DNA of 40,061 bases from Schizochytrium sp. TIO01 (taxonomy: Eukaryota > Protista > Bigyra: Labyrinthulomycetes). The notes under the pieces are model-generated. The model worked only from the letters and a program-made list of their open reading frames with translations, was not told where the DNA came from and did no database searches. The translations under genes and the position numbers were made by a program. The stretch covers positions 1-40,061 of the forward strand of contig SMSO01000017.1 in the NCBI GenBank assembly GCA_004764695.1, written 5' to 3'. This document shows, piece by piece, positions 7,241-31,895 of the stretch; the stretch's first letter is position 1; every line of letters starts with the position of its first letter.

Positions 7241-7460
<220 letters not shown>

Positions 7461-10501: not shown

Positions 10502-11455
10502 ATGGTCTCTACGGAGCTTAATGCCGTGCTTAAGCGCAACGCAAGCAACTCCGCTGTGGCAGCTCGTGCCGTGCAAAATGAGGTTCGCCGTGGCGTCTCT
10601 GCAGTCGGCCGCGTCCCCAACTCAACCCGTGAGCGCATGATTGCTCCCATCTCTGGCTTCGCATCTGCTGCCATCGAGATCTCCACGCTCTGGCCTGCAG
10701 AGTACGCCAAAACTGCCCTTCAACTTAACAAGGACAACAAAGACTTCCGCATCATGAGCCACATGAAGGAGCGTGGCTTCGGTATCTACCGTGGCTTGGC
10801 GCCGCTGTTGATCGGAGCACCCCTCCAGGGTCTCCTCCGCTTCTCCACCCTCGACTACTTTAACCGTACTCTCGCAGACCCCACCACTGGTCGCCTCTCC
10901 GTCGCATCTGGACTCTGCGCAGGTATTGGTGCCGGAATCCTCGAGTCTCTTCTTGTTGTTACTCCTATGGAGACTGTCAAGACCCAGCTCATCCACGCAA
11001 ACAAGGGCCTTGTTGAGGGCACCAAGTTCATCATTCAGACCCAGGGCATCTCCGGTATGTACAAGGGCTGCGGCGCCACCATCGCCAAGTCCGCAAGTAA
11101 CCAGGCTCTTCGCTTTGTGATCTTCAATACCTACAAGAACTACATGCTTGAGAACCCCACCGAGCAGAAGCTCACCGCTGGCCAGGCTCTCTTTGGCGGT
11201 ATGCTTGCTGGTGCTCTTGGAGCCCTCGGCAACACACCCATTGACACCATCAAGTCCCGCACCCAGGGTCTTGACGGCCACCGCTACAAGAACATGTTCC
11301 ACTGCGGTTACACCATGGTCAAGGAGGAGGGCCCCCTCAGTCTCTACAAGGGTTTGATCCCGCGTCTCGCACGCACCCTCCCTGGCCAGGGTATCATCTT
11401 CTGCTCTTACGAGATGATTAGCACCTCTCTCCGCGGCGTCTTGCTTGATGAGTAA
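10502..11455 (+). CDS. Mitochondrial carrier family (SLC25) protein, tricarboxylate/citrate transporter-like (SLC25A1/CTP1 type), 317 aa
   Basis: Three Px[DE]xxK signatures (PAEYAKTALQ, PMETVKTQL, PIDTIKSRTQ), [DE]G-x-x-x-x-Y-[KR]G motifs (GFGIYRG, QGISGMYKG, EEGPLSLYKG), strong C-ending codon bias, no intron needed. The signature context resembles citrate carriers; the substrate call is an inference. Confidence 0.93.
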   Translation: MVSTELNAVLKRNASNSAVAARAVQNEVRRGVSAVGRVPNSTRERMIAPISGFASAAIEISTLWPAEYAKTALQLNKDNKDFRIMSHMKERGFGIYRGLAPLLIGAPLQGLLRFSTLDYFNRTLADPTTGRLSVASGLCAGIGAGILESLLVVTPMETVKTQLIHANKGLVEGTKFIIQTQGISGMYKGCGATIAKSASNQALRFVIFNTYKNYMLENPTEQKLTAGQALFGGMLAGALGALGNTPIDTIKSRTQGLDGHRYKNMFHCGYTMVKEEGPLSLYKGLIPRLARTLPGQGIIFCSYEMISTSLRGVLLDE

Positions 11456-16973: not shown

Positions 16974-17238
16974 CTAACCTAACTAACCTACCTAACTAAC
17001 CTAACCTAACCTAACCTAACCTAACCTAACCTAACCTAACCTAACCTAACCTAACCTAACCTATACCTAACCTAACCTAACCTAACCTAAAACCTAACCT
17101 AACCTTACCTAACCTAACCTAACCTAACCTAACCTAACCTAACCTAACCTAACCTTAACCTAACCTTACCTTACCTAACCTTACCTAACCTTACCTAACC
17201 TTACCTAACCTTACCTAACCTTACCTAACCTTACCTAA
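16974..17238. repeat. Telomeric repeat tract (CCTAA)n = (TTAGG)n on the minus strand, with proximal (CCTTACCTAA)7 variant
   Basis: ~265 bp of CCTAA read directly. TTAGG is the telomere repeat reported for Aurantiochytrium. The orientation is that of a left chromosome end. Confidence 0.92.
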
Positions 17239-18709
17239 TGATTGTTTATTATGGTGTTTCTTAATGGTTTTACAATAAAAATTTTAATGAAGAATTAAAA
17301 ATATTTTCTTTTTTAAAAGAAAAAATTTTTACGCGCCTGCTGACATTCGTGGATATGGGAGACTTCAATAAGAACCGTCTATAATACGATGGAAGTCCTT
17401 TTGTCTAATTTTTTTAAGTATTTTCTCATCATCATTTTAACCTGTATCTGCGATGAGTTGTGAAGCGTTCTACTGGTGCTTGTAGATAGTTTCTAACTAT
17501 TTTATTGATAGAGTTATGACACTGCAAAGTCTGCCTGTTCTCCTTATTAGTTATATGAGAAACTTAGAAATAACTTTCAAAGTCAATAAAACTCAATTTG
17601 AAGTTTTAGTTTTCTTAATGAAGACAGGTTTCCTGTCGTATTGCGCAGCAGCTTTCCGATAGTACCATTCCATGATTAATAGGTGACTCATTTGTTGAGC
17701 AAATGAATCTTATGCTAACCATTTAATTTTATGTGCTGCTAAAAATTAGAGTGATAGCTAAGACCTGTTCCCTGTAGCGTGCAAGAAGATTTCTTCTCAT
17801 CAAGCAAATGTGTCCATCTTAGCCATGAACGAGCTACCGAGTGGTTCTTGTGGAAAAGTTCTACCTACTTTTTTGATTGCGTAAAAACACTACTAAACTC
17901 GGTTCCTCCTCCTTAATAATGATATGAGAAACTAAGAAATAACTTTCGAAAGTCAATAAAAACATAAATATAATTTTAATTTCTCTTAGCAAACGCATCT
18001 ACCCTGTTGCAAAGTGACACATGTTTCCAAGGGTACCATTCGATGATTATTATATAACCCGGTTTTTGAGAAAATTAATCTTGTACTAAACATTTTGTTT
18101 TATATCCTCCTTACAAATAGAGTGCCATATTGATGTTTTTTTTCTCAATCTTGCAAGAATATTTTTTATCATAAATCAAATGCGCGCATCTTAACAGTTC
18201 ATGAATTATCGAATTGTGCTTGTAGAAATGCTCTGGCTATTGCATTGATAAAGTCAGAACACTACTAATTTCGGTTCCTTCCCCATATTATTAATATGAA
18301 AGACCAAAAAATATCTTTTAAAGGTCAATAAAATCATAATCATAGTTTTGTTTTTATAAATCAAGATATTTTCCCTAATGTAAATTGAAACAGCTTTCCA
18401 ACGGTACCATTCCATGATTAATATCTTTCCCCGTTGTTGAGAAAATGAATCTTATTCTAAACAATTGATTCTCTGTCCTGCTAACAAATAGAGTGATAAC
18501 CTCCAGCTTCATTTCTCAAGCTTGGAAGAAAATTATTTCTCATAAATCAAATGCACTTATCTTATTATTTCATGAACTATTGAGTGGTGTTTGTAGAAAA
18601 GCTCTGCTTATTCTGTTCATAGTGTCAAGAGATAATCTATATATGGGACCGGGGTATACTAGGTATTGACGAGTGGTCATTAGTCACGCCTTTTTATAGC
18701 CCCTTAACA

Positions 18710-18720
18710 GATTAAGAGTC
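18710..18720 (+). promoter_or_regulatory. TRIM primer-binding site complementary to the tRNA-Lys(CUU) anticodon arm
   Basis: GATTAAGAGTC is the reverse complement of GACTCTTAATC, the conserved anticodon stem-loop of eukaryotic tRNA-Lys(CUU). It abuts the 5' LTR. Confidence 0.75.
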
Positions 18721-18723
18721 AAA

Positions 18724-18778
18724 TAGCTGAAACTCTAGGAGATAGAGTTGCCGTATGTTGGTCCCGGGTTCGATCCCC
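18724..18778 (+). promoter_or_regulatory. tRNA-like Pol III internal promoter (A-box-like TAGCTGAA, B-box GGTTCGATCCC) inside the TRIM
   Basis: GGTCCCGGGTTCGATCCCC (18760-18778) matches a tRNA variable loop plus T-arm. The A-to-B spacing (~44 nt) is close to that of a tRNA gene. Confidence 0.55.
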
Positions 18779-21700
18779 CCATGATGTAAGTGCCTGGAAA
18801 AAGAAGGACTTACTGGGGGGTAGGGGTGTCCTATTCCTGCTGGGATGTCGAATCAGTCTCTAACCGAAATATGAACCTTTCGCCCAGAGAATGGGGGGGT
18901 GTCAAGAGATAATCTATATATGGGACCGGGGTATACTAGGTATTGACGAGTGGTCATTAGTCACGCCTTTTTATAGCCCCTTAACACATAGAGTTAAAAC
19001 ACTACTAAACTTAGTTCTTTCCCCTTATTAATAATGAGAAACTAAGAAATAGCTTTGAAAAGTCAATAAAAACATAATCATATTTTAATTTTTTCTGAAC
19101 CAACACCTCTACCTTGTTGTAAATTTCACCAGCTTTGCAACGGTACCCCTCCATGATAAATATATTTTACCATTGTTGAGAAAATGAATATTATACTAAT
19201 TATTTAATTCTTTATTTTTTTGACAATTAGAGTGACAACTTGGAGCTTTCTTTCTTAAGCTTGAAAGTATATTATTTCTCGCAAATCAAATGCAGGCATC
19301 TCAGCAATTTATGTGCTATCACGTTATCGCTACAGGAAAGTTTTGGATATTCTATTGACAGAGTTAGAACACTACTAAACTCGTTTCTTTCTCCCTATTT
19401 TTAATATGAGAGACCAAAGAATAACTTTCAAAGATCAGTAAAAATAACTTTTAAAATCATTTCGCTTGAGAAAACACATTTCCCCTGTTGCAAATTGAAG
19501 TGGCTTTCCAACGGTACCGCTCGATGATTAATAGATTATCTCATTGTTGAGAAAACGAATTTTATACTCATTAATTTATTCTTTATCCTGCCAACAAATA
19601 GAGTGACAATTTAGAGCTTCTTTTCTCAAGCTTGCAAGAAGCTTTTCTCTTATGAATCAAATGTGAGCATTGCAGCAAGTAATGGGCTATCGAGTGGATC
19701 TTCTAGAAAATTTCTGGTTTTTCTGTTCATAGAGTTAGAACTCTACTAAACTTAGCTCTTTCTCCTTATGAGTAATATGAGAAACTAAGAAATAACTTTC
19801 AAAAGTTAATAAAAACAAAACCATAATTTTATTTTTTTTTAACGAACACATCTACCCGGTTGTAAATGTTTCAAGCTTTCCAATGGTACCACTGGATGAT
19901 TAATAGATTATCTCATTGTTGAGAAAATGAACATTATACTAATCAATTTATTCTTTATCCTGCTCACAAATAGAGTGACAACTTGGAGCCTCTTTTCTCA
20001 AGCTTGCAAGTATGTTTTTTCTCATAAATCAAATACACGTATCTTAACAATTCATGAACTATTGAATGGTGCTTGTAGAAAAGCTCTGTCTATTCTATTG
20101 ATAAAGTTAGAACACTACTAAACTCAGCTCTTTCTCCTTATTAATAATATGAGAGACTAAGAAATATCTTTCAAAAGTTAATAAAAACAAAACCATAATT
20201 TTATTTTTTCTGAACCAACACATCTACCCTGTTGTAAATTCAAGCAGCTTTCCAATGGTACCACTGGATGATTAATATATTATCTCATTGTTGAGAAAAT
20301 GAATATTATACTAATCAATTTATTCTTTATCCTGCTCACAAATAGTGACAACTTGGAGCTTCTTTTCTCAAGCTTGCAAGTATGTTTTTTCTCATAAATC
20401 AAATACACGCAACTTAACAATTCATGAGCTATCGAATGGGGCTTGTAGTAAAGCTCTGGCTATTCTATTGATAAAGTTAGAACACTACTAAACTTGGTAC
20501 CTTCCCCCTATTAATAATATGAGAGACCAAAATTAAACTTTCAAAGCTCAGTAAAACTATATATTAAAAGTATTTTTTCTGAGAAAACACATCTACCCTG
20601 TTGTAAATTCAAACAGCTTTCCAATGGTACCACTCGATGATTAATATATTATCTCATTGTTGAGATATTGAATCTTATACTATTCATTTTGCCCTTTATC
20701 CTGCTAATAAATAGAGTAACAACTTGGAGCTTCTTTTCTCAAGCTTGCAAAAATATTTTCAATCATAAATCAGACGCGGTTATCTCAAAAATTCATGATT
20801 TATCGAATGGTGCTTGTAACAAAGTTCTGTCTGTTATAGTAATAGAGTTATAACACTACTAAACTCGGTTTCTCCCCCTATTAATAATATGAGAAACAAA
20901 GAAATATCTTTCAAAAGTCAATAGAACATAGTCATATATTTTTTTTCCTCTGAACCAACACATGTATCCTGTTGTAAATTGCAACAGCTTTCCAACGGTA
21001 CCAATCCATGATTAATATATTGCTTAATCATTGAGAAAATGAATCTTGTACAAATCTTTTAATTCTTTCTTTTGTTATTAAATAGAGTAACAACTTAGAG
21101 CTTCTTTTCTCAAACTTGAAAAAAGATTTTCTCTCATAAATCAAATGCGGCCATCTCCACAATTCATGCGCTATCGAATGGTTCTTCTAGAAAAGTTCTG
21201 TGTACTCTACTCATAGAGTTAAAACACTACTAAACTCGGTTCCTTTCCCCTATTAATAATATGAGAGACAAAAATTAAACTTTCAAAGGTCAGTAAAACT
21301 ATATGTTAAAGTATTTTTCTGAGAAATTACATCTACCCTGTTGCAATTTCAAGCCGCTTTCCAATGGTACCAGTCCATGATTTATATATTTTCCCGTTGT
21401 TGAGAAAATGCATCTTATACTAATCATTTAATTCTTTCTTTTGTTATCAAATAGAGTGACAACTTAGAGCTTCTTTTCTCAATCTTGCAAGAAGCTTTTC
21501 TCTCATAAATCAAACGCGGCCATCTCAACAATTCTTGAGCTATCGAATTGTGTTTGTAGAAAAGTTCTGTATATTCTACTCAAAGAGTTAGGACACTACT
21601 AAACTCGGCTCCACCCCCCTATTAATAATATGAGAGACTAAAGAATAACTTTCAAAGGTCAATAAAACTATATGTTAAAAGTATTGTTTTCTGAGAAAAC

Positions 21701-22306
21701 GCATCTACCCTGTTGTAGATCTTAACAGCTTTCCAACGGTATCACTCCATGATTAATATCTTTCCCCATTGTTGAGAAAATGAACCTTATAGTAGCAAAT
21801 GTTTTCTTATCCTGCCATTAAACAAAGTAACAACTTGGAGCTTTTTTACTCGAGCTTGCAAGCAAGTATTTCTCATAAATCAAATACACAGATCTTAACA
21901 ATTCATACGCTATCGAGTGGGACTTGTGGCAAAGCTCTGTCTATTCTATTAATAGAGTTAGAACACTACTAAACTCGGTTTCTCTCCCTATAAATAATAT
22001 GAGAAACAAAAAAATATCTTTCAAAAGACAATAAAACATAATCATTATTTTATTTTTTCTGAACCAACACATCTCCCCTGTCGTAAATTGAATCTACTTT
22101 CCATCGGTACCACCCCATCATTAATATCTTTCCCCGTTGTTGAGAAAATGATTTTATACTAGCCGTTTAATTCTCTATCCTGCTCACAAATAGAGTAGCA
22201 ACTTGGAGCTTCTTTTCTGAAGCTTGCAAAAACATGTTTTCTCATAAATCAAATGCACGTATCTCATTAAAACGTGAACTATTGAGTGCTTTTTATAGAA
22301 AAGTTT

Positions 22307-22772
22307 TGTTGAATGCTGTAGAGTGACAGAGACTCGAAAGGTTGTTTACTTTTTAGGTTGAGGTTGTATAGTTTGAGGTCTGCTGACATACTGCCGGCAG
22401 TGAAGAAGTTATTTCTACTCAGTCTCTGTTACACATGTCCTTTATTAGTGGCGGCCACCGAGCGGAAAACCGCAACTACTAGTGTTTAGTCCATGTGTCC
22501 CTTAGTGAGTATTTGTTTTCTTGATAAAGATTCTCCTACGTTCTTTGATACTTTTACAGTGGTATTATGGGTTAATACTCGTGTTCATGTATATAATTCA
22601 CGAGCATTACCCTAACCCTACTACTGCAAAAGGTATAATAAGAAAGTTAAGAGATTCTTTGTTGTCCAATGCTTAACCTTTACCCTAACCCTACCTCTGT
22701 AAAAGGTATGATTAGAAAGGCAGGAGACTCCTTGTTATCCCGACTCGGGACCAACAATTCGTCTAGACAACA
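22307..22772 (-). repeat. Copia 3' LTR (466 bp, TG...CA)
   Basis: TGTTG...CAACA termini; preceded on the minus strand by the polypurine tract GGGGAGGTG (22781-22773). Confidence 0.95.
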
Positions 22773-25700
22773 CACCTCCCCAAACTTCTTAGACGTGAGC
22801 CTTGTTCCTAGAAGTGCAGATACAGAGCGATCCGTATCTCCGGGAGTTACGTGCCCAAGAAAAGCAAGGCAGATGCGGTAGATATGATAGTGATGAAGCT
22901 CCCGACTAAGGTGTTTGGTCAACACGTCAGCTGGATTGGTCCGAGTGTTTTCATAGGATAGAGAAATGATGTTGTCCTCTAAAAGTTGATGAAGATGGTG
23001 TCTGCGAATGTCCACATGCTTAGAGTTGTTGCCAACGCTCAAGTTTCGAATCAAAGGGATGATAGCTTGGTTGTCCGTGTATAGTGGCGATGCATCGGCT
23101 TGGGGACAGCCCAGAAAATCTAAGATGCGACGGTTCCAAATAATGGCTTTAGCGGCTTCGTTCGCAGCGTAGAGTTCTGCCTCAGTTGAGGAAAGTGCCA
23201 CAGTTCGTTCTGTACTAGACTTTGTCAGAATGGTAGACCCATTAACTGCTAGCAGGTAGCCAAGCGTAGAACGTCGTGTGTAAGGGCAAGGCGCGTAAGA
23301 GGCATCGCACCAAGCTTCAAGCTTTATGTCCGAAAGTTGTATGGCTCCTCGTAAGACTATCCCGATGTTGCTTGTGCCAGCAAGGTAACGTAAAACAGCT
23401 TTGGCTGCTGTAAAGTGTTCTTCGGTTGCTGCACGGTTGTGTCTACCAAGTTCTTTAACTGCGAATGCAATGTCGGGGCGTGTATTGACTATCCATTGAA
23501 GACTTCCCACCAATGACTGATAAAGGGGATCAGTTTTGGCCTCCTTAGGAAATGTTAACGGGTTTGCAGATGCAGGAGTGATGCGTGGTTGACAATTGTT
23601 AAGACCATGAGTTTCGAGAAGTTCCTCAATAAAGTCGGCATGATCTAACAAAGCGATCTTGGAACTTCGATTGATCGTAAGGTGCGCTCCAAGGTATCGA
23701 ACACGTTTGTTGTCAGGTAAATGTTCGAAGTCCACTTTGTCGTTCCCAAAATATGATTTTAAATGACCTTCAAGAGCTTTGACACTCGAGGTAGGACCAG
23801 AAACCAAACCATCATCGACATGGGTAGACACTGTCAGGTTCAGGCCTTTATGATGGAAAAGGCATGCATCATCGGGGCAAGGTGCTAAGCCAAAAGCATC
23901 AAAAGCATGCGCTAGTTCTTTGTAAAATCTTAGCGGAGCAGATGAGATGCCATAGACAGATTTCAGAAGGCGATAGTAAGTGTATTCACCGTAGAAAGTC
24001 CGTACTCGTATGAAAATGTCTTTGTCATGTACCGGTGCAGTGAGGAAAGCACTTGTAATGTCGAAAATAGCAAAGTCATGCTCCTGTGTAAGACCCAAGG
24101 TAATTTGGATGCGTACGGAAGATGGCATCGTAACTGGTGATGCTACTTCTTGTTCAGAGGTTGGTTCTTGATCACCGCGAACAACAAGTCTCATCTTAAG
24201 TCTACGGCGCCCTTCGTTGTCTGCGGGCTTTTTCTTGTAGACCTTCATGACATCTAAGACTTTTCCACGCACCTCCGACTTTGGGACTTCTTGCAGGGTT
24301 TCTTGTGCTGCATGATTTGCCATTTCTTCATCGTCTGTTTTCCTCCACATGGCTTTCTCATAGTCGCTGTAAAGTCGAAGATCACTTTCGTGACGAGGCT
24401 CGCGAACAGGTCTGCGTGGGTCCTCGTAAACGTGAGTGTTTGAAGTAGAAGCTTCCTGATTGTTCACCTCCTTCGTCAACAAAGCTGGAGCTGAAGTTGA
24501 GGAACTTGGATGGAAGGTTTTACCACTTCTTGTTGTAGAGCCGGTGTCGACGTCGCCAAGAATTGGATCTACCCAATGGAATTTGTTGTTTGCTATTTGT
24601 AGAACTTGTCCAGGGTATAATGGACCAGCATCAACAAATTCACGAAGAGCTTGCTTAAACTCGGAGGAGTAAGACGGTTTCTGTTTATACTTACGCGGTG
24701 GTTTCTGTGAAGAATCCACCTCCTGCTCAATGATGGTAACATCGGGCACCTCCTTCTCTATAATGGTAGCGTCTGGCCCCTCCTGATCAATGTTAATAAG
24801 ATCAGGCACCTCCTGATCAATGCTAATAAGATCAGGCACCTCCTGCTGAAAGTCTATAAGGTCGGACACCTCCTGCTCTGGACTGGATGTTGCGGGAGTA
24901 CTTTGGGCAGGATAGCTAAAATGTAGATCTGCTTCGTTTTCGCCAGAAGAGCCTGCGAGATCAAAGTTGGCAGAGACTTCTTTAGTGAAGGAGGGGCTGG
25001 AGGGATAGGTGATCTCTGAAGAGTTTGAAGGAAGAACCAGAGGCGAGGCATCTTTGGTAAGAGGGTGGAAAAAATCAGAACTCGATGGACTCGAAGTAAT
25101 GTCACCGTAATCGTTGGAGAAAACCTTTACTGGGGCAGTATTGTGTAAAGAGTTGTTCAGAAGTTGCTTGCGAATGTAGTCAGATGATTCAGAAAGCTGA
25201 GGAAGGTAAGGCAGAGCACGGTAGCTCCGCGAAAAGACGATGCGGCGAGAGTCCAAAGACATGATGCGTGATGTCCCAAAGCTATGTCGAGAACTGCAGC
25301 CCAGAAAAATACCAAGGCTTCCTTTGGCAGCAAAGTCGCTTTTAGTTGCAACACTGGGATTGTGTTGATGGTAGGCAACAAGGGTGCCAAATTGTCGACT
25401 TGGAGACAAATCGGCAGTACCACATCCATGAATGACAGCAGGCACCTTAGAGGTCCGAGGCGATGGAAGGCGGTTAAGGGTCCAACATGCGTAATCAGTT
25501 GCAAAATCCCAAAAGGTGCTCGGGAGATTGCAGTCATGAAGATAGGACCAAGCGAGGCGAGAAACGAGACCTACTGTGCGTTCAGCGACGCCATGAGTAC
25601 CGTGTTCATGGGGAGATGCAAATTGCAGTTTCCAATTGTACAAGTCCATTTGCTCCTGTACAAGTTTAGAAGCGAAAGCATGATCAGCGATGAGAGTTAA

Positions 25701-27662
25701 GCCTTCAGGGGTTGAAGTTTTCCCGGGAGCGGCGCCGAGCCAGTCTCTGCGCCACGCCCGAATGGCTTTGACAAGTGTTTCGGCATTGCACTCAGGAAAC
25801 GAATAGCATCGCCGATACTTGGAGTAATCGTCCACAAAGACAACACAGTATTTATTGCCTGTGCTGGAGCGCGTTTTAATACCAAGCAGGTCGACATGTG
25901 ATACTTGGCGCGGACCGGTACTGCGAGGTGAGTGAGGTCCTTTACGAATGGGAGAGCGCGATGAGTCACCTTGAGCACAGCCAGGGCAGACTGGAAAAGA
26001 TCCTTGTATTTTCGCAAGAGGGAGTCCCGAAACTTGTTTTGATATAGCATCAAGTGTTTCGAATGAGCGATGTCCAGCTCTACGATGGGCCTCAAGAATG
26101 TCGAGTCCGGCAAACACTGGTGTTGCAGTTGGTTCGCTGGTAGTGTCCTGTGCATAAGTCAATGCGTTGTTACAAAATTGTAAAGGGATCTCTTGATTTT
26201 GCCAGACAAGGACTTGGCGATCTTTGGTAATGTGTAGCTCGGCTCCAGCAGCGTGTAGAGCAGCGAGACTTTCAAGTACAGCTGGGGCCCTGTCATGTAC
26301 TTGAGCAGGTATGGCGGGGGCGTTGGGAATGAATGGCGATAGGTAAGTGCCTACACTGTCTGGATTTTGTAATTCACCTGAGACACCTACAATAGGTGTT
26401 GCTTTTTGTAGAGGTAGTTCAGAATGAATGTGTCGACGGCTAGGAACAACTGTAACACCAGCTCCACTGTCAATAACAGTTGAAGGAAAAGCATTGCCAC
26501 CAAGGTAAGCAGACTTTGAAAAATCTTTTACGTTAGCAGCAAAGTATTCCTCAGTGGGAACGCTGCGGCAGACTATGGCCTTGTGACCTGGTTTGTTGCA
26601 GCGGGCGCAACGAACTCTAGGGTCAAGGGTGCAATTGTCGGTGGCGTGATTTTGCGCGCAACGAAGACAACGGTGGGAGTTGTTTCGATGAGAGCCATGG
26701 TATCTGCCACGAGAACGGTAATTGCGGGGCTGCGGAGGGCTTGGAGAGTTGCCAAAGGCTTGGCTAACAGCTGCAGCGAGTTGTAAAAGTGTCGCGTCAG
26801 TAGAAGCGCCAAAAGCACCAGTCACTTCATTGGAAACAGAAGTGTTGGCAGCTTTAGCAGATTCCATAGTCAGGCCGGTGCGTTCGTGAATGACACGGAA
26901 TGTCAGAGTAGAGTGAGCGTAGAGATCAGCCTTGATCTTGTCATACTCTGCAGGGAGCTGTTGGATGTAGCTGAACAGCATGATAGACTGTAACGTAGGG
27001 CGAGTCTTTTCGAGCTTGGCAATGGCGGTGTTCAACTTGTCGATGTGGTCGTCCAGCTTGGAGCGATCCTCGTGGGGCTTGGGACAAGCGGCCATGACAC
27101 TCATCAGCTCTTTCCAACGACGCTGTTGGTTGAGTCTAGAGTGCTGGTTGAAGCGTTGTCTTAGCACGTACCACCCGACAAGGCCGCTGCCTTTGGCATA
27201 CCTGGAGCGTATGACCGAAGACAGGGATGACTTCTTGAAACCTTCGAGCAGGAAGAGTGCCAACACAGAGTCCTGGGCTTTGCAAATGGATGCCGGCTGG
27301 CCAGGTTTCCATGTATTGATGTCCTTGAAGGGAAGTTCGTAGTAGCCGCAGAAGCCTTCGAAGAAATCGGAGTATTCTTCAAAGTCGCCGTCGTACGTTG
27401 GTGTCGAGCGATTATTTTCGAAGTAGCGCTTGATACCTTTGATGAGAGCCGGGGTCTCAGGTTGGTAATGAATGGTTGGGGCTGACTCGGACGCCAGCAG
27501 AAAGTCCAGGTTGTCGCTGGAGTGCATCGCGGTGGCAGGGACCGCGGGGAGGGGACCATGAAAGTTGGCGGTTGCCATACTTTCACTGTCGTCATCATCG
27601 TCGTCTTCATACACGACGGAGGCGACCTCCTCATGTTCGGAGGCTACTTCTTCTTGCACCAT
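22680..27662 (-). CDS. Copia Gag-Pol polyprotein, 1660 aa
   Basis: Zn knuckles CLRCAQNHATDNC and CARCNKPGHKAIVC; protease VIDSGA; integrase HRRAGH..CPGC with DDE region (HVDL, FVDDYS, IADH, VAERT) and GIFLG; RT FDITSAFL and HVDDGL; RNase H WCDASYA, STEAEL, YTDNQA, NPADVLTK. Confidence 0.97.
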   Translation of the reverse strand: MVQEEVASEHEEVASVVYEDDDDDDSESMATANFHGPLPAVPATAMHSSDNLDFLLASESAPTIHYQPETPALIKGIKRYFENNRSTPTYDGDFEEYSDFFEGFCGYYELPFKDINTWKPGQPASICKAQDSVLALFLLEGFKKSSLSSVIRSRYAKGSGLVGWYVLRQRFNQHSRLNQQRRWKELMSVMAACPKPHEDRSKLDDHIDKLNTAIAKLEKTRPTLQSIMLFSYIQQLPAEYDKIKADLYAHSTLTFRVIHERTGLTMESAKAANTSVSNEVTGAFGASTDATLLQLAAAVSQAFGNSPSPPQPRNYRSRGRYHGSHRNNSHRCLRCAQNHATDNCTLDPRVRCARCNKPGHKAIVCRSVPTEEYFAANVKDFSKSAYLGGNAFPSTVIDSGAGVTVVPSRRHIHSELPLQKATPIVGVSGELQNPDSVGTYLSPFIPNAPAIPAQVHDRAPAVLESLAALHAAGAELHITKDRQVLVWQNQEIPLQFCNNALTYAQDTTSEPTATPVFAGLDILEAHRRAGHRSFETLDAISKQVSGLPLAKIQGSFPVCPGCAQGDSSRSPIRKGPHSPRSTGPRQVSHVDLLGIKTRSSTGNKYCVVFVDDYSKYRRCYSFPECNAETLVKAIRAWRRDWLGAAPGKTSTPEGLTLIADHAFASKLVQEQMDLYNWKLQFASPHEHGTHGVAERTVGLVSRLAWSYLHDCNLPSTFWDFATDYACWTLNRLPSPRTSKVPAVIHGCGTADLSPSRQFGTLVAYHQHNPSVATKSDFAAKGSLGIFLGCSSRHSFGTSRIMSLDSRRIVFSRSYRALPYLPQLSESSDYIRKQLLNNSLHNTAPVKVFSNDYGDITSSPSSSDFFHPLTKDASPLVLPSNSSEITYPSSPSFTKEVSANFDLAGSSGENEADLHFSYPAQSTPATSSPEQEVSDLIDFQQEVPDLISIDQEVPDLINIDQEGPDATIIEKEVPDVTIIEQEVDSSQKPPRKYKQKPSYSSEFKQALREFVDAGPLYPGQVLQIANNKFHWVDPILGDVDTGSTTRSGKTFHPSSSTSAPALLTKEVNNQEASTSNTHVYEDPRRPVREPRHESDLRLYSDYEKAMWRKTDDEEMANHAAQETLQEVPKSEVRGKVLDVMKVYKKKPADNEGRRRLKMRLVVRGDQEPTSEQEVASPVTMPSSVRIQITLGLTQEHDFAIFDITSAFLTAPVHDKDIFIRVRTFYGEYTYYRLLKSVYGISSAPLRFYKELAHAFDAFGLAPCPDDACLFHHKGLNLTVSTHVDDGLVSGPTSSVKALEGHLKSYFGNDKVDFEHLPDNKRVRYLGAHLTINRSSKIALLDHADFIEELLETHGLNNCQPRITPASANPLTFPKEAKTDPLYQSLVGSLQWIVNTRPDIAFAVKELGRHNRAATEEHFTAAKAVLRYLAGTSNIGIVLRGAIQLSDIKLEAWCDASYAPCPYTRRSTLGYLLAVNGSTILTKSSTERTVALSSTEAELYAANEAAKAIIWNRRILDFLGCPQADASPLYTDNQAIIPLIRNLSVGNNSKHVDIRRHHLHQLLEDNIISLSYENTRTNPADVLTKHLSRELHHYHIYRICLAFLGHVTPGDTDRSVSALLGTRLTSKKFGEVCCLDELLVPSRDNKESPAFLIIPFTEVGLG
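24721..24870 (-). repeat. 30-bp coding tandem repeat x5 in the integrase-RT linker (EVPDLISIDQ-like)
   Basis: Period-30 repeats read directly; they encode EVSDLIDFQQ EVPDLISIDQ EVPDLINIDQ EGPDATIIEK EVPDVTIIEQ. Confidence 0.9.
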
Positions 27663-27713
27663 GGTCGGGCCAGTGCAGAGAGTGCGCGGGGCAGCAAAGA
27701 ACGAGAGTTAATA

Positions 27714-27724
27714 GGCCAATAACC
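27714..27724 (-). promoter_or_regulatory. Copia primer-binding site, half-tRNA type (GGTTATTGGCC)
   Basis: Lies 3 nt inside the 5' LTR. It resembles the GGTTATGGGCC-type PBS of copia/Ty5, which pairs with the tRNA-iMet anticodon arm. There is no TGG start. Confidence 0.7.
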
Positions 27725-27727
27725 TTT

Positions 27728-28193
27728 TGTTGAATGCTGTAGAGTGACAGAGACTCGAAAGGTTGTTTACTTTTTAGGTTGAGGTTGTATAGTTTGAGGT
27801 CTGCTGACATACTGCCGGCAGTGAAGAAGTTATTTCTACTCAGTCTCTGTTACACATGTCCTTTATTAGTGGCGGCCACCGAGCGGAAAACCGCAACTAC
27901 TAGTGTTTAGTCCATGTGTCCCTTAGTGAGTATTTGTTTTCTTGATAAAGATTCTCCTACGTTCTTTGATACTTTTACAGTGGTATTATGGGTTAATACT
28001 CGTGTTCATGTATATAATTCACGAGCATTACCCTAACCCTACTACTGCAAAAGGTATAATAAGAAAGTTAAGAGATTCTTTGTTGTCCAATGCTTAACCT
28101 TTACCCTAACCCTACCTCTGTAAAAGGTATGATTAGAAAGGCAGGAGACTCCTTGTTATCCCGACTCGGGACCAACAATTCGTCTAGACAACA
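27728..28193 (-). repeat. Copia 5' LTR (466 bp, TG...CA)
   Basis: Same sequence as 22307-22772. Confidence 0.95.
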
Positions 28194-28198
28194 AAAAG

Positions 28199-29330
28199 TT
28201 CTGGCTTTTCTTTTCATAGAGCTAGAACAATACTAAACTCAGTTATTTCTCCTTATTAATAATATGAGAAACCAAAAATAAACTTTCAAAGGTCAGTAAA
28301 ACTATATGTTAAAAGTATTTTTTCTGAGAAAACACATCTACCCTGTGTCAAATCTTAACAGCTTTCTAACGGTACCACTCCATGATTAATATCTTTCCCC
28401 GTTGTTGAGAAAATGAACCTTATACTAATCATTTTGCTGCGCACAAATAGAGTGGCAACTTAGAGCTTCTTTTCTCAGGCTTGACAGGGTCTTTTTTCTC
28501 ACAAATCAAATTCGGGCATCTCAGCATTTCGTGTGCTATCAAGGGACTCCTATATCAAAGTCCTTTCTATTCTATTCATTGAGTTAGAACACTACTAAAC
28601 TCAGTTCTTACTCCCTATTAATGATATGGGCGACTAAGAAATAACTTTCAAAGGTCAGTAAAAATAAATTTAAAAATATTTCGCCTGAGAAAACACATCT
28701 ACCCTGTTGTAAATCTTAACAGCTTTCCAACGGTACCACCTGATGATTAATATCTTACCCCGTTGTTGAGAAAATGAACCTTATACTAATCCTTTTTCTG
28801 CTCACAAATAGAGTGCCAACTTAGAGCTTCTTTTCTCAGGCTTGCAAGAAGAGTTTCTCTCATAAATCAAATGCACCCACTTTCAATATTACTCAGCTAT
28901 CAGACGATACTTGTAGCAAAGTTCTGTCTATTATATGCATAAAGTTACAACACTACTAAACTCGTTTCCTTCCCCATATTAATAATATGAGAGACCAAGA
29001 AATAACTTTCAAAGGTCAGTAAAAACACATGGGAGATGTGTTTTCTCAAAAACAAATACTTCAACATGTTGCAAATTTCGGAAGCTTTCTGATGATACTT
29101 CTGAAACATTAATATCTTTAGTGGTTAATGACATATTGTCCCTTGTGAGGATCCATCAACTGCTTGTTTAAATAAAGTGATAAATAGGAGCTACTTTTCG
29201 CAAGCTTGAAAACATATTTCTTCGCAGCTATTATGACTATCCTGTGGTAACAACGAAGCACTTCCCGACGGTGCTTGTCGAAAAGACCTTACAATTTTAT
29301 CAAGAAAGTTATAACAGTACTAAGTTTAGT
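28199..29330. repeat. Subtelomeric array, continuation after the copia insertion (~361-364-bp units)
   Basis: Anchors at ~28227, 28589, 28950 and 29314; units are shorter and increasingly diverged. Confidence 0.88.
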
Positions 29331-30219: not shown

Positions 30220-31895
30220 AGTTAAATTAAAAATAATTTAAAAAGATGGCAACTACGTAGGGGTCAAACTCAATGTTGCCGAGAGTATTTTTCAATTCGG
30301 GCACACCAATTCTATGCAAAATTAAATTTCCGATCTAATGATATCATTTTTATGGATCTCACTTCTCTTGGTGTTGACAAAATACCCCTTTATGCAAAGT
30401 AATAGTATATTGAAAAAGACAGAGCCAGTTGAAAGAAACGTCTTAACTATACTGTAGGGGTCTTCTGAGCCATTAATAAAATGTTTTTTAACTTTTGGGC
30501 TGTCACAAAGTTCATACTTTCCAAATCCTAGCTGGCAGTCCAAAATCGAAAAATATCGATCAACTCCCCATCGAGAAAAGACCCCCTCAATAGTATCTTT
30601 TTCTTACTTTCTTTTTAAAATTAAAAACCTTCAGTTAGATTTAAAAGAAAATTAAAAGATGGCAACTACGTAGGGGTCAAACTCGATGTTGCCGAGAGTA
30701 TTTTTCATTTATGACACGCCTATCCTATTCAAAATCGAATTTCCGATTTAGTGATACCATTGTTATGGATCTCACTTTTCTTGGTGTTGACAAAATACCC
30801 CATTGTTCAAAGTAACAATATATTGAGAAAGACAGAGCGAGTAAAAAGAAACGCCTTAACTATACTGTAGGGGTCTTCCGAGCCATTAATAAAATGTTTT
30901 TTAACTTTTGGGCTGTCACAAAGTTCATACTTTCCAAATCCTAGCTTGCAGTTCAAAAACGAAAAACATCGATCAACTCCTCATCGAGAAAAGACCCCCT
31001 CAATAGTATGTTTTCTTACTTTCTTTTTTAAAATTAAAAACCTTCAGTTAGATTTAAAAGAAAATTAAAAGATGGCAACTACGTAGGGGTCAAACTCGAT
31101 GTTGCCGAGAGTATTTTTCATTTATGACACGCCTATCCTATTCAAAATCGAATTTCCGATTTAGTGATACCATTGTTATGGATCTCACTTTTCTTGGTGT
31201 TGACAAAATACCCCATTGTTCAAAGTAACAATATATTGAGAAAGACAGAGCGAGTAAAAAGAAACGCCTTAACTATACTGTAGGGGTCTTCTGAGCCATC
31301 AATAAAATGTTTTTTAAATTTTGGGCTGTCACAATGTTCATACGTTATGAATCCTAGCTCGTAGGCCAAAAACGAAAAACATCGATCAACTCCTCGTCGA
31401 GAAAAGACCCCCTCAATAGCATTATTCTTACTTTCTTTTTAAAATTAAAAACCTTTAAATAGATTTAAAAGAAAATTAAAAGATGGCAACTACGTAGGGG
31501 TCAAACTCGATATTGCCGACCGTATTTTTCATTTATGACACGCCTATCCTATGCAAAATTGAATCTCCTATCCAATGATACCACTGTTATGGACCTCTCT
31601 TTGTTTGGTGTAGATTAAATACCTCTTTGTTCAAAGTGATAGTATATTGAGAAAGACGGAGCGAGTTGAAAGAAACGTCTTAACTATACTGTAGGGGTCT
31701 TCTGAGCTATCAATCAAACTATTTTTTACCTTTTGGTCTCCTACAATGTTCATACGCTCTGACGCCTTATCCTGGTCCAAAAACGAAAATTATTGATCAA
31801 CTCCTGGTCGAGAAAATACCCCCTCAATAGCATTATTTTTACTTTCTTTTTTAAATTAAAAACCTTTTAAACAATTCTTTAAATTTAAAAGAAAG
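30220..31895. repeat. ~412-bp tandem repeat, 4 copies
   Basis: GATGGCAACTACGTAGGGGTCAAACTC starts at 30245, 30658, 31071 and 31482. Confidence 0.93.

Follow-up and report, generated by a model that had tools for sequence, protein, structure and literature searches.

Does a miniature retrotransposon whose interior holds a perfect tRNA-type B-box carry a working RNA polymerase III (Pol III) gene? The question is raised by a 364-bp element at positions 18623-18986 of a 40,061-nt stretch of Schizochytrium sp. TIO01 (GenBank assembly GCA_004764695.1, contig SMSO01000017.1, positions 1 to 40,061 of the forward strand; hereafter the window). The first-pass annotation had described it as a terminal-repeat retrotransposon in miniature (TRIM) with a tRNA-derived Pol III cassette, that is, a head like that of a short interspersed element (SINE). 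Our analysis suggests that it is probably an ordinary non-autonomous TRIM, mobilised by a Copia element and primed by half of a tRNA-Lys(CUU), with a captured patch of a tRNA T arm and no working Pol III gene.

Direct reading of 18400-19200 and a repeat finder define the element as two 87-bp long terminal repeats (LTRs) around a 190-bp interior (Table 1). The LTRs begin with TGTCAAG, close with TTAACA and are 100% identical to each other. The element is non-coding, and its interior of 190 nt is too short for gag or pol. The LTRs, the CATAG target-site duplication and the polypurine tract (PPT) named in the first-pass annotation are confirmed, and the interior motifs and the T5 run of the 3' LTR lie where it had placed them. 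The classification as a TRIM also stands, given the LTRs, primer-binding site (PBS), PPT and target-site duplication, many independent young insertions and tandem LTR-interior-LTR-interior-LTR forms.

A genome-wide search for copies and tandem arrays, suggested in the same annotation, found both. In the 64-Mb assembly (37 contigs, the window being contig C16) there are at least 33 full-length matches at 96-100% identity and 11 further LTR-only matches; solo TRIM LTRs are present in the genome. Two tandem LTR-interior-LTR-interior-LTR arrays were identified (C24:27388-28028 and C12:21435-22074). Flanks were compared for every copy within the retrieved loci, and these copies gave 24 distinct flank pairs. 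When the two tandem arrays and one duplicated locus are merged, about 21 insertions result, 20 of which have a perfect 5-bp duplication of their own (for example CTATT, TTACT, CGTTT, AAATA, TAGAC and AAGTC). The sole imperfect duplication among the ~21 insertions is the 4-bp GTAT around a nested copy (locus L022, 186-547; C3:2319665-2320026, with a duplicate in C36). One TRIM copy lies within a Copia LTR and one within a fragment of another TRIM LTR. Since the copies are near-identical and have independent flanks and their own target-site duplications, the TRIM is a real, very young, non-coding LTR element. Relatives were absent from two metagenome pattern scans.

A 371-bp subtelomeric satellite hosts 19 of the 24 flank pairs, and the repeat finder shows the window TRIM interrupting this AT-rich tandem repeat. 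In the window, the 361-371 bp tandem repeat extends over 18987-22256 and 28195-29025. The flanks of the window copy are the same as those of the copy at C33:1886, so C16 duplicates that C33 chromosome end. Besides this pair (C16 and the start of C33), identical flanks link C3 with C36 and C13 with C24 and C30, and copies at C33:1977200-1977563 (- strand) and C33:1980357-1980720 (+ strand) form another such or inverted pair. Such pairs indicate that chromosome ends are partly duplicated. The duplicated ends are segmental or palindromic duplications, or redundant contigs, and raw copy counts are inflated.

The start of the interior shows how the TRIM may be primed. By sequence reading, TGG is absent directly after the 5' LTR. 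The 14 nt found there instead, GATTAAGAGTCAAA, are the exact reverse complement of TTTGACTCTTAATC, which occupies standard positions 27-40 in the anticodon arm of a tRNA. A pattern search found TTTGACTCTTAATC in 25 host genes, and those checked with ARAGORN are tRNA-Lys(CTT). When the element was compared with six host tRNAs by BLAST, only two matches were significant, one of them being this site against tRNA-Lys(CUU) (14/14 antisense, E 3.7e-4). The first-pass annotation had left its PBS unspecified; the site is now borne out as a 14/14 complement of the tRNA-Lys(CUU) anticodon arm that adjoins the CA end of the LTR. By its sequence the PBS is real but unconventional and of the half-tRNA type, and its geometry suits a predicted primer ending at C40. 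Self-priming as in Tf1 was considered and rejected, with no convincing complementarity between PBS and LTR by eye. A minus-strand reading in which TGGGGGGATCGAACCCGGGACC would be PBS-like was also rejected: the motif abuts no LTR, is without the acceptor-stem portion that a real tRNA 3' end would have, and has no PPT in that direction. The host tRNA genes occur in dense head-to-tail arrays, including at least 13 tRNA-Lys(CTT) genes that recur every 209 bp or so (C35:886110-888667) and 12 tRNA-Ile(AAT) genes in 4.9 kb (locus L063, C35:1170800-1175700).

Priming by half of a tRNA is known from Drosophila copia and yeast Ty5. It has also been described in several plant Copia lineages (PMC6317226), in Candida elements with internal tRNA-derived PBSs (PMC4139406), and in Puccinia Copia elements and the fungal Helenus TRIMs, in which the PBS matches an anticodon loop (PMC10886601). 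Half-tRNA priming and 5-bp target-site duplications are both Copia traits (PMC10886601, PMC6317226). The TRIM resembles the half-tRNA-primed Copia elements (copia, Ty5, plant Osser, Bryco and Bianca, and those of Puccinia and Candida) in that its PBS complements an anticodon stem-loop and not the tRNA 3' end, in a predicted primer 3' end at position 39-40, and in its putative helper from the Copia superfamily. It differs in the tRNA species, which is Lys(CUU) here and iMet, Ile, Tyr, Asp, Asn or Arg in the cited papers; the Candida elements use an internal tRNA-Arg or tRNA-iMet site.

The same PBS points to the helper. Outside TRIM copies and tRNA-Lys genes, the PBS 14-mer occurs at only five sites in the genome. 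For four of the five (C8:151066, C21:8299, C21:16249 and C36:5011093), a match to RVT_2 (the Copia-type reverse transcriptase, RT) follows on the same strand exactly 3377 nt downstream, and these RVT_2 matches sit within 1671-aa open frames of four Copia copies. In locus L007, the first C21 copy ends on its 3' side in a 582-bp LTR, TGTCGGAG...GCTTGTCA. At this one Copia 3' end, the junction between PPT and U3 reads CCAGAGCATTGGGGGCAGGGGG followed by TGTC, and that of the TRIM reads CCAGAGAATGGGGGGG followed by TGTC (shuffle p = 0.007). From these sequence features, the four 1671-aa Copia copies are likely the helpers of the TRIM. A shared PBS with unrelated LTRs is also the relationship reported between Helenus and its Copia helpers (PMC10886601).

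Two related candidates were rejected. The TRIM LTR is not a deletion derivative of the 582-bp helper LTR, the similarity being confined to the TGTC start and the CTT..CA end. The Copia element in the window itself (about 22304-28193) has no homology with the TRIM and a different PBS, GGTTATTGGCC. Two of the 1671-aa copies share the minus strand of C21:4260-16262 at a distance of 7950 bp, with a TRIM copy (C21:1880-2243) and a solo TRIM LTR (C21:745-831) as neighbours; this arrangement could represent a tandem or nested array of helpers where the contig ends.

The interior also contains a tRNA-like 19-mer, GGTCCCGGGTTCGATCCCC. This sharply bounded patch runs from the variable loop through the 5' strand of the T stem and the T loop into the first part of the 3' strand, and it agrees with host tRNA-Thr(CGT) and tRNA-Ile(AAT) at 18/19 positions and with tRNA-Lys(CUU) at 17/19. 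Allowing up to two mismatches, the genome has 95 matches, of which those listed are all in tRNA genes or TRIM copies, and a reversed-pattern control gave 0. The exact 19-mer (31 matches) is confined to TRIM copies. Among the matches listed, those with one mismatch are tRNA-Thr(CGT) and tRNA-Ile(AAT) genes and a single variant TRIM insertion that is found at two duplicated loci (C3:2321117 and C36:35264), and those with two mismatches include tRNA-Lys(CTT). With the primer tRNA-Lys the patch has the T loop in common, with 13 contiguous identical nt. By our own estimate, comparing a 190-nt interior with the tRNA set would give about 2e-4 matches of 18/19 by chance. The comparison with host tRNAs suggested in the first-pass annotation thus came out better than chance, and we judge the 19-mer to be truly tRNA-derived.

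The resemblance to a tRNA ends with this patch. No acceptor stem was seen by sequence reading, only 3/5 pairs of the T stem can form, and comparison of the LTR with host tRNAs gave no match longer than 7 nt. In the minimum free energy (MFE) structure, the 18775-18820 hairpin joins the 3' end of the patch to a run of G residues further downstream, so the T-arm hairpin is not formed. The RNA fold of the whole interior is ordinary against shuffles (z = -0.73), and a structured interior RNA was therefore rejected.

We assessed the proposed Pol III cassette with several tRNA-finding approaches. Rfam gave no tRNA or 5S match at E<=10 over 18500-19100 (601 nt), and the tRNA model RF00005 gave none at E<=10 in a 96-nt scan. 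ARAGORN found 0 genes at thresholds from the default to 70%; at 60% it made one 'tRNA-Ser' call, a level at which 183 of 200 random window pieces were also called. An origin from a whole tRNA was rejected, as neither Rfam nor relaxed ARAGORN gave anything above noise. Anchored alignments of the 43 nt at 18717-18759 with the first two-thirds, from the 5' end, of six host tRNAs were no better than those of shuffled sequences (p 0.07-0.9; 2000 shuffles per tRNA), and the significance of an A box was rejected on these alignments.

At the proposed A box, 18724, only TAGCT is kept; the half with G18/G19 is missing, and there is no YGG at the tRNA offset. This 'A box' reads TTGC in two distinct flank-pair copies, and TAGCTGAA is not common to the TRIM and its Copia partner. 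Box B is perfect at 18767-18777, and the copy identity of 96-100% leaves too little variation to show constraint on the boxes: an alignment of the 24 distinct copies has 31 variable columns, about 20 in the interior and 1 in the 19-mer. Of the A and B boxes at near-tRNA spacing described in the first-pass annotation, the spacing and a canonical B-box stand and the A box is unconvincing. Without a cloverleaf, an acceptor stem or a significant A box, the tRNA-derived cassette or SINE-like head is unsupported. The interior has no TTTT, which is not unusual, as more than half of such 190-nt sequences would lack it by chance (our own estimate).

We propose the following model for the spread of the TRIM. 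We infer that it would be transcribed from its own LTR by RNA polymerase II (Pol II), probably from the TATA-like box, and that the 1671-aa Copia family would provide the packaging and copying of its RNA in trans. The minus strand is predicted to be primed by a 5' fragment of tRNA-Lys(CUU) ending at position 40 and paired with the 14-nt PBS, the plus strand would begin at the G-rich PPT, and integration would generate the 5-bp duplications, mostly in the 371-bp subtelomeric satellite. The 19-nt patch may be a short capture, made if RT, while synthesising the minus strand, jumped to a co-packaged tRNA and then returned; its sense orientation and sharp 19-nt borders fit such an event. Because spread needs R at both ends, the start of the transposing RNA has to lie within the 5' LTR. 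Transcription by Pol III from the interior boxes would begin at about 18706-18717 and give an RNA with no R-U5 and with little or none of the PBS. We agree here with the first-pass annotation, which had noted that the transcript would lack R-U5, and such an RNA cannot explain the spread. As it is not reverse-transcribable into a new copy, selection on the element cannot maintain an interior Pol III promoter. In the tandem forms, a Pol III RNA would end at the first LTR T5.

Several observations weigh against the reading of a Copia-mobilised TRIM with a short tRNA capture. The LTR bodies of TRIM and Copia are unrelated, and more than three differences separate the two elements both in the last 13 nt of the LTR and in the 10 nt that follow the PBS. 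The likeness to the helper covers the shared PBS at four copies and one 3' end. A neutral relic should decay and the B-box is a perfect host-type box with sharp borders, though the family is too young for decay to be expected. Finally, TAGCT and the patch are 36 nt apart, the spacing of tRNA-Thr(CGT), for which we estimate, post hoc, a chance probability of about 0.02.

One alternative is that the interior is a working tRNA-derived type-2 Pol III promoter (A 18724, B 18767), giving a non-coding RNA of ~250 nt that ends at the T5 of the 3' LTR, or a TFIIIC insulator or positioning site. Host tRNA-Lys and tRNA-Ile have the identical B-box GGTTCGATCCC, genuine tRNAs match the 19-mer at 18/19 positions, TAGCT is at tRNA-Thr spacing, no TTTT precedes the 3' LTR T5, and TRIMs with Pol III promoters exist, namely Cassandra, Helenus and Ajax (PMC10886601). 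However, the A box lacks its G18/G19 half and is altered to TTGC in two flank-pair copies, no tRNA model or cloverleaf fits, the region upstream of the patch is like shuffles, a TTTT-free interior is expected by chance, and the near-identity of the copies makes conservation impossible to demonstrate. The published promoters sit in the LTR, so that their RNA carries R, whereas the RNA here would be without R-U5. We consider a working promoter or TFIIIC site unlikely. Because the B-box is canonical for the host, its sequence would still permit TFIIIC binding, and it is conceivable, with the same low probability, that each TRIM copy seeds a TFIIIC site resembling 'extra-TFIIIC' sites, or a weak Pol III unit, in the subtelomeric satellite. 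Alternatively, the patch could be the last trace of an insertion, either a complete tRNA gene or a tRNA-derived SINE, that decayed within the interior and has no present function. TAGCT and the T-arm patch at tRNA spacing would fit this origin, and SINE insertion into TRIMs has been proposed for the TRIMs with Pol III promoters (PMC10886601). Yet neither the sequence separating TAGCT from the patch nor that beyond the patch shows any residual similarity, an acceptor stem is missing, and uniform decay should not spare an 18/19 19-mer beside unrelated flanks. In the 19-mer search with up to two mismatches, no SINE in the genome carries the patch, and a source SINE is lacking because no other genomic repeat has the interior. 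This origin is improbable in our assessment.

The T-arm look-alike might instead act in cis, for example as a tRNA mimic for RNA packaging or for factors that select or cleave the primer tRNA. The patch is 36 nt downstream of a tRNA-dependent PBS, and the closest tRNAs have the T loop of the primer tRNA-Lys, including the 13 contiguous nt noted above. Against this, the Copia elements with the same PBS have no patch near it within 2 mismatches, and the patch forms no T hairpin, with 3/5 stem pairs and MFE pairing elsewhere; we know of no precedent. A cis signal is thus very unlikely. Pure coincidence would be suggested by the shortness, G+C-richness and low complexity of the patch, and the small number of 18/19 matches expected by chance, together with 0 reversed-control matches against 95, makes it hardly credible. 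Together, we favour a TRIM that moves with a Copia helper and contains a short capture from a tRNA T arm.

Elsewhere in the window, an intact, very young Copia lies at 22304-28193 (- strand), with 469-bp LTRs that are 100% identical, a CTTTT target-site duplication and a 1660-aa open reading frame with RVT_2. Like the TRIM, it interrupts the 371-bp satellite, and its PBS resembles a half-tRNA site of an anticodon arm (iMet- or Ile-like). A telomere-like tract of ~53 CTAAC copies at 16974-17238 is internal in the contig and not at its end. A separate 413-bp tandem repeat (4 copies, about 90% identity) is at 30220-31866, and a near-perfect (ATCA)55 microsatellite at 7241-7460. Near the chromosome-end repeats there is also an ordinary host gene, a 317-aa open reading frame at 10502-11455 (+ strand) in which the mitochondrial-carrier repeat (Pfam PF00153) occurs three times.

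Table 1 Features of the window copy of the TRIM, in window positions
Feature	Position	Strand	Basis
Left target-site duplication, CATAG	18618-18622	+	Read from sequence; repeated at 18987-18991
5' LTR, 87 bp, TGTCAAGAG...CCTTAACA, TG..CA ends	18623-18709	+	Identical to 3' LTR (reading, repeat finder)
TATA-like TATATAT in 5' LTR	18638-18644	+	Putative promoter role
T5 run in 5' LTR	18691-18695	+	Read from sequence
PBS GATTAAGAGTCAAA, 14 nt, abuts 5' LTR	18710-18723	+	Exact reverse complement of host tRNA-Lys(CUU) positions 27-40
TAGCTGAA, 'A box' of the first-pass annotation, directly 3' of PBS	18724-18731	+	Only TAGCT fits TRGCY
7-bp hairpin AACTCTA-GGAGA-TAGAGTT	18731-18749	+	Sequence reading; present in MFE and centroid folds
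tRNA-like 19-mer GGTCCCGGGTTCGATCCCC, sense, tRNA positions about 45-63	18760-18778	+	Match to host tRNA genes
Canonical B-box GGTTCGATCCC inside 19-mer	18767-18777	+	Equals B-box of host tRNA-Lys and tRNA-Ile
Long imperfect hairpin CCCCCCA...GTAAGT / ACTTAC..TGGGGGG	18775-18820	+	RNA fold
G-rich PPT AGAGAATGGGGGGG, abuts 3' LTR	18886-18899	+	Read from sequence
3' LTR, 87 bp	18900-18986	+	Identical to 5' LTR (reading, repeat finder)
T5 run in 3' LTR	18968-18972	+	Read from sequence
Right target-site duplication, CATAG	18987-18991	+	Read from sequence

The TRIM can be placed among known systems as follows. With TRIMs it shares short identical TG..CA LTRs, a PBS and a PPT, a non-coding length below 1 kb, a 5-bp target-site duplication, solo LTRs, tandem LTR-interior-LTR-interior-LTR forms and a presumed dependence on an autonomous LTR element. 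It differs in its size (364 bp with 87-bp LTRs, short against 311-1263 bp for Helenus; PMC10886601), in its thraustochytrid host and in a half-tRNA PBS matching tRNA-Lys(CUU). We found no paper describing TRIMs of thraustochytrids. With SINE2 elements it has in common a short non-coding retroelement body and a B-box-like motif. SINEs have no LTRs, PBS or PPT, and carry a tRNA-like 5' head with A and B boxes and a tail that is A-rich or related to a long interspersed element; such a head and tail are absent here, and no free SINE has the interior.

The closest comparison is with TRIMs that have Pol III promoters derived from small RNAs, termed TRIMp3, which include Cassandra (5S), Ajax (5S) and Helenus (tRNA) (Kojima 2024, PMC10886601). 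The first-pass annotation knew of no TRIM with a tRNA-derived cassette, a view that is outdated, as Helenus TRIMs with tRNA-derived boxes A and B have been published; in all TRIMp3 the promoter sits in the LTR (PMC10886601). The element resembles Helenus and other TRIMp3 in being a TRIM that contains tRNA-like sequence with a B-box, and the fungal Helenus in its anticodon-loop PBS, 5-bp target-site duplications and candidate Copia helpers with unrelated LTRs. In Helenus, Cassandra and Ajax, however, the promoter is in the LTR and both boxes are kept, whereas here the LTR has nothing tRNA-like and the patch is interior, covers the T-arm region only and comes with no convincing A box. Because its LTR has no promoter derived from a small RNA, the element is not filed as Helenus. 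Its sequence features are those of a canonical TRIM with a putative Copia helper and a half-tRNA PBS.

Our results add a well-documented, very young TRIM, paired with a likely Copia helper, to the thraustochytrids, a stramenopile group, and would extend half-tRNA priming to tRNA-Lys(CUU). They also correct the impression that tRNA-bearing TRIMs are undescribed. For annotation, they indicate that a perfect B-box within a repeat is insufficient to call a Pol III gene or a SINE. If the B-box did bind TFIIIC, roughly 30 copies in the subtelomeric satellite could affect the chromatin of chromosome ends, and the TRIM would then be spreading Pol III-factor sites from its interior, a layout outside those of Helenus, Cassandra and Ajax.

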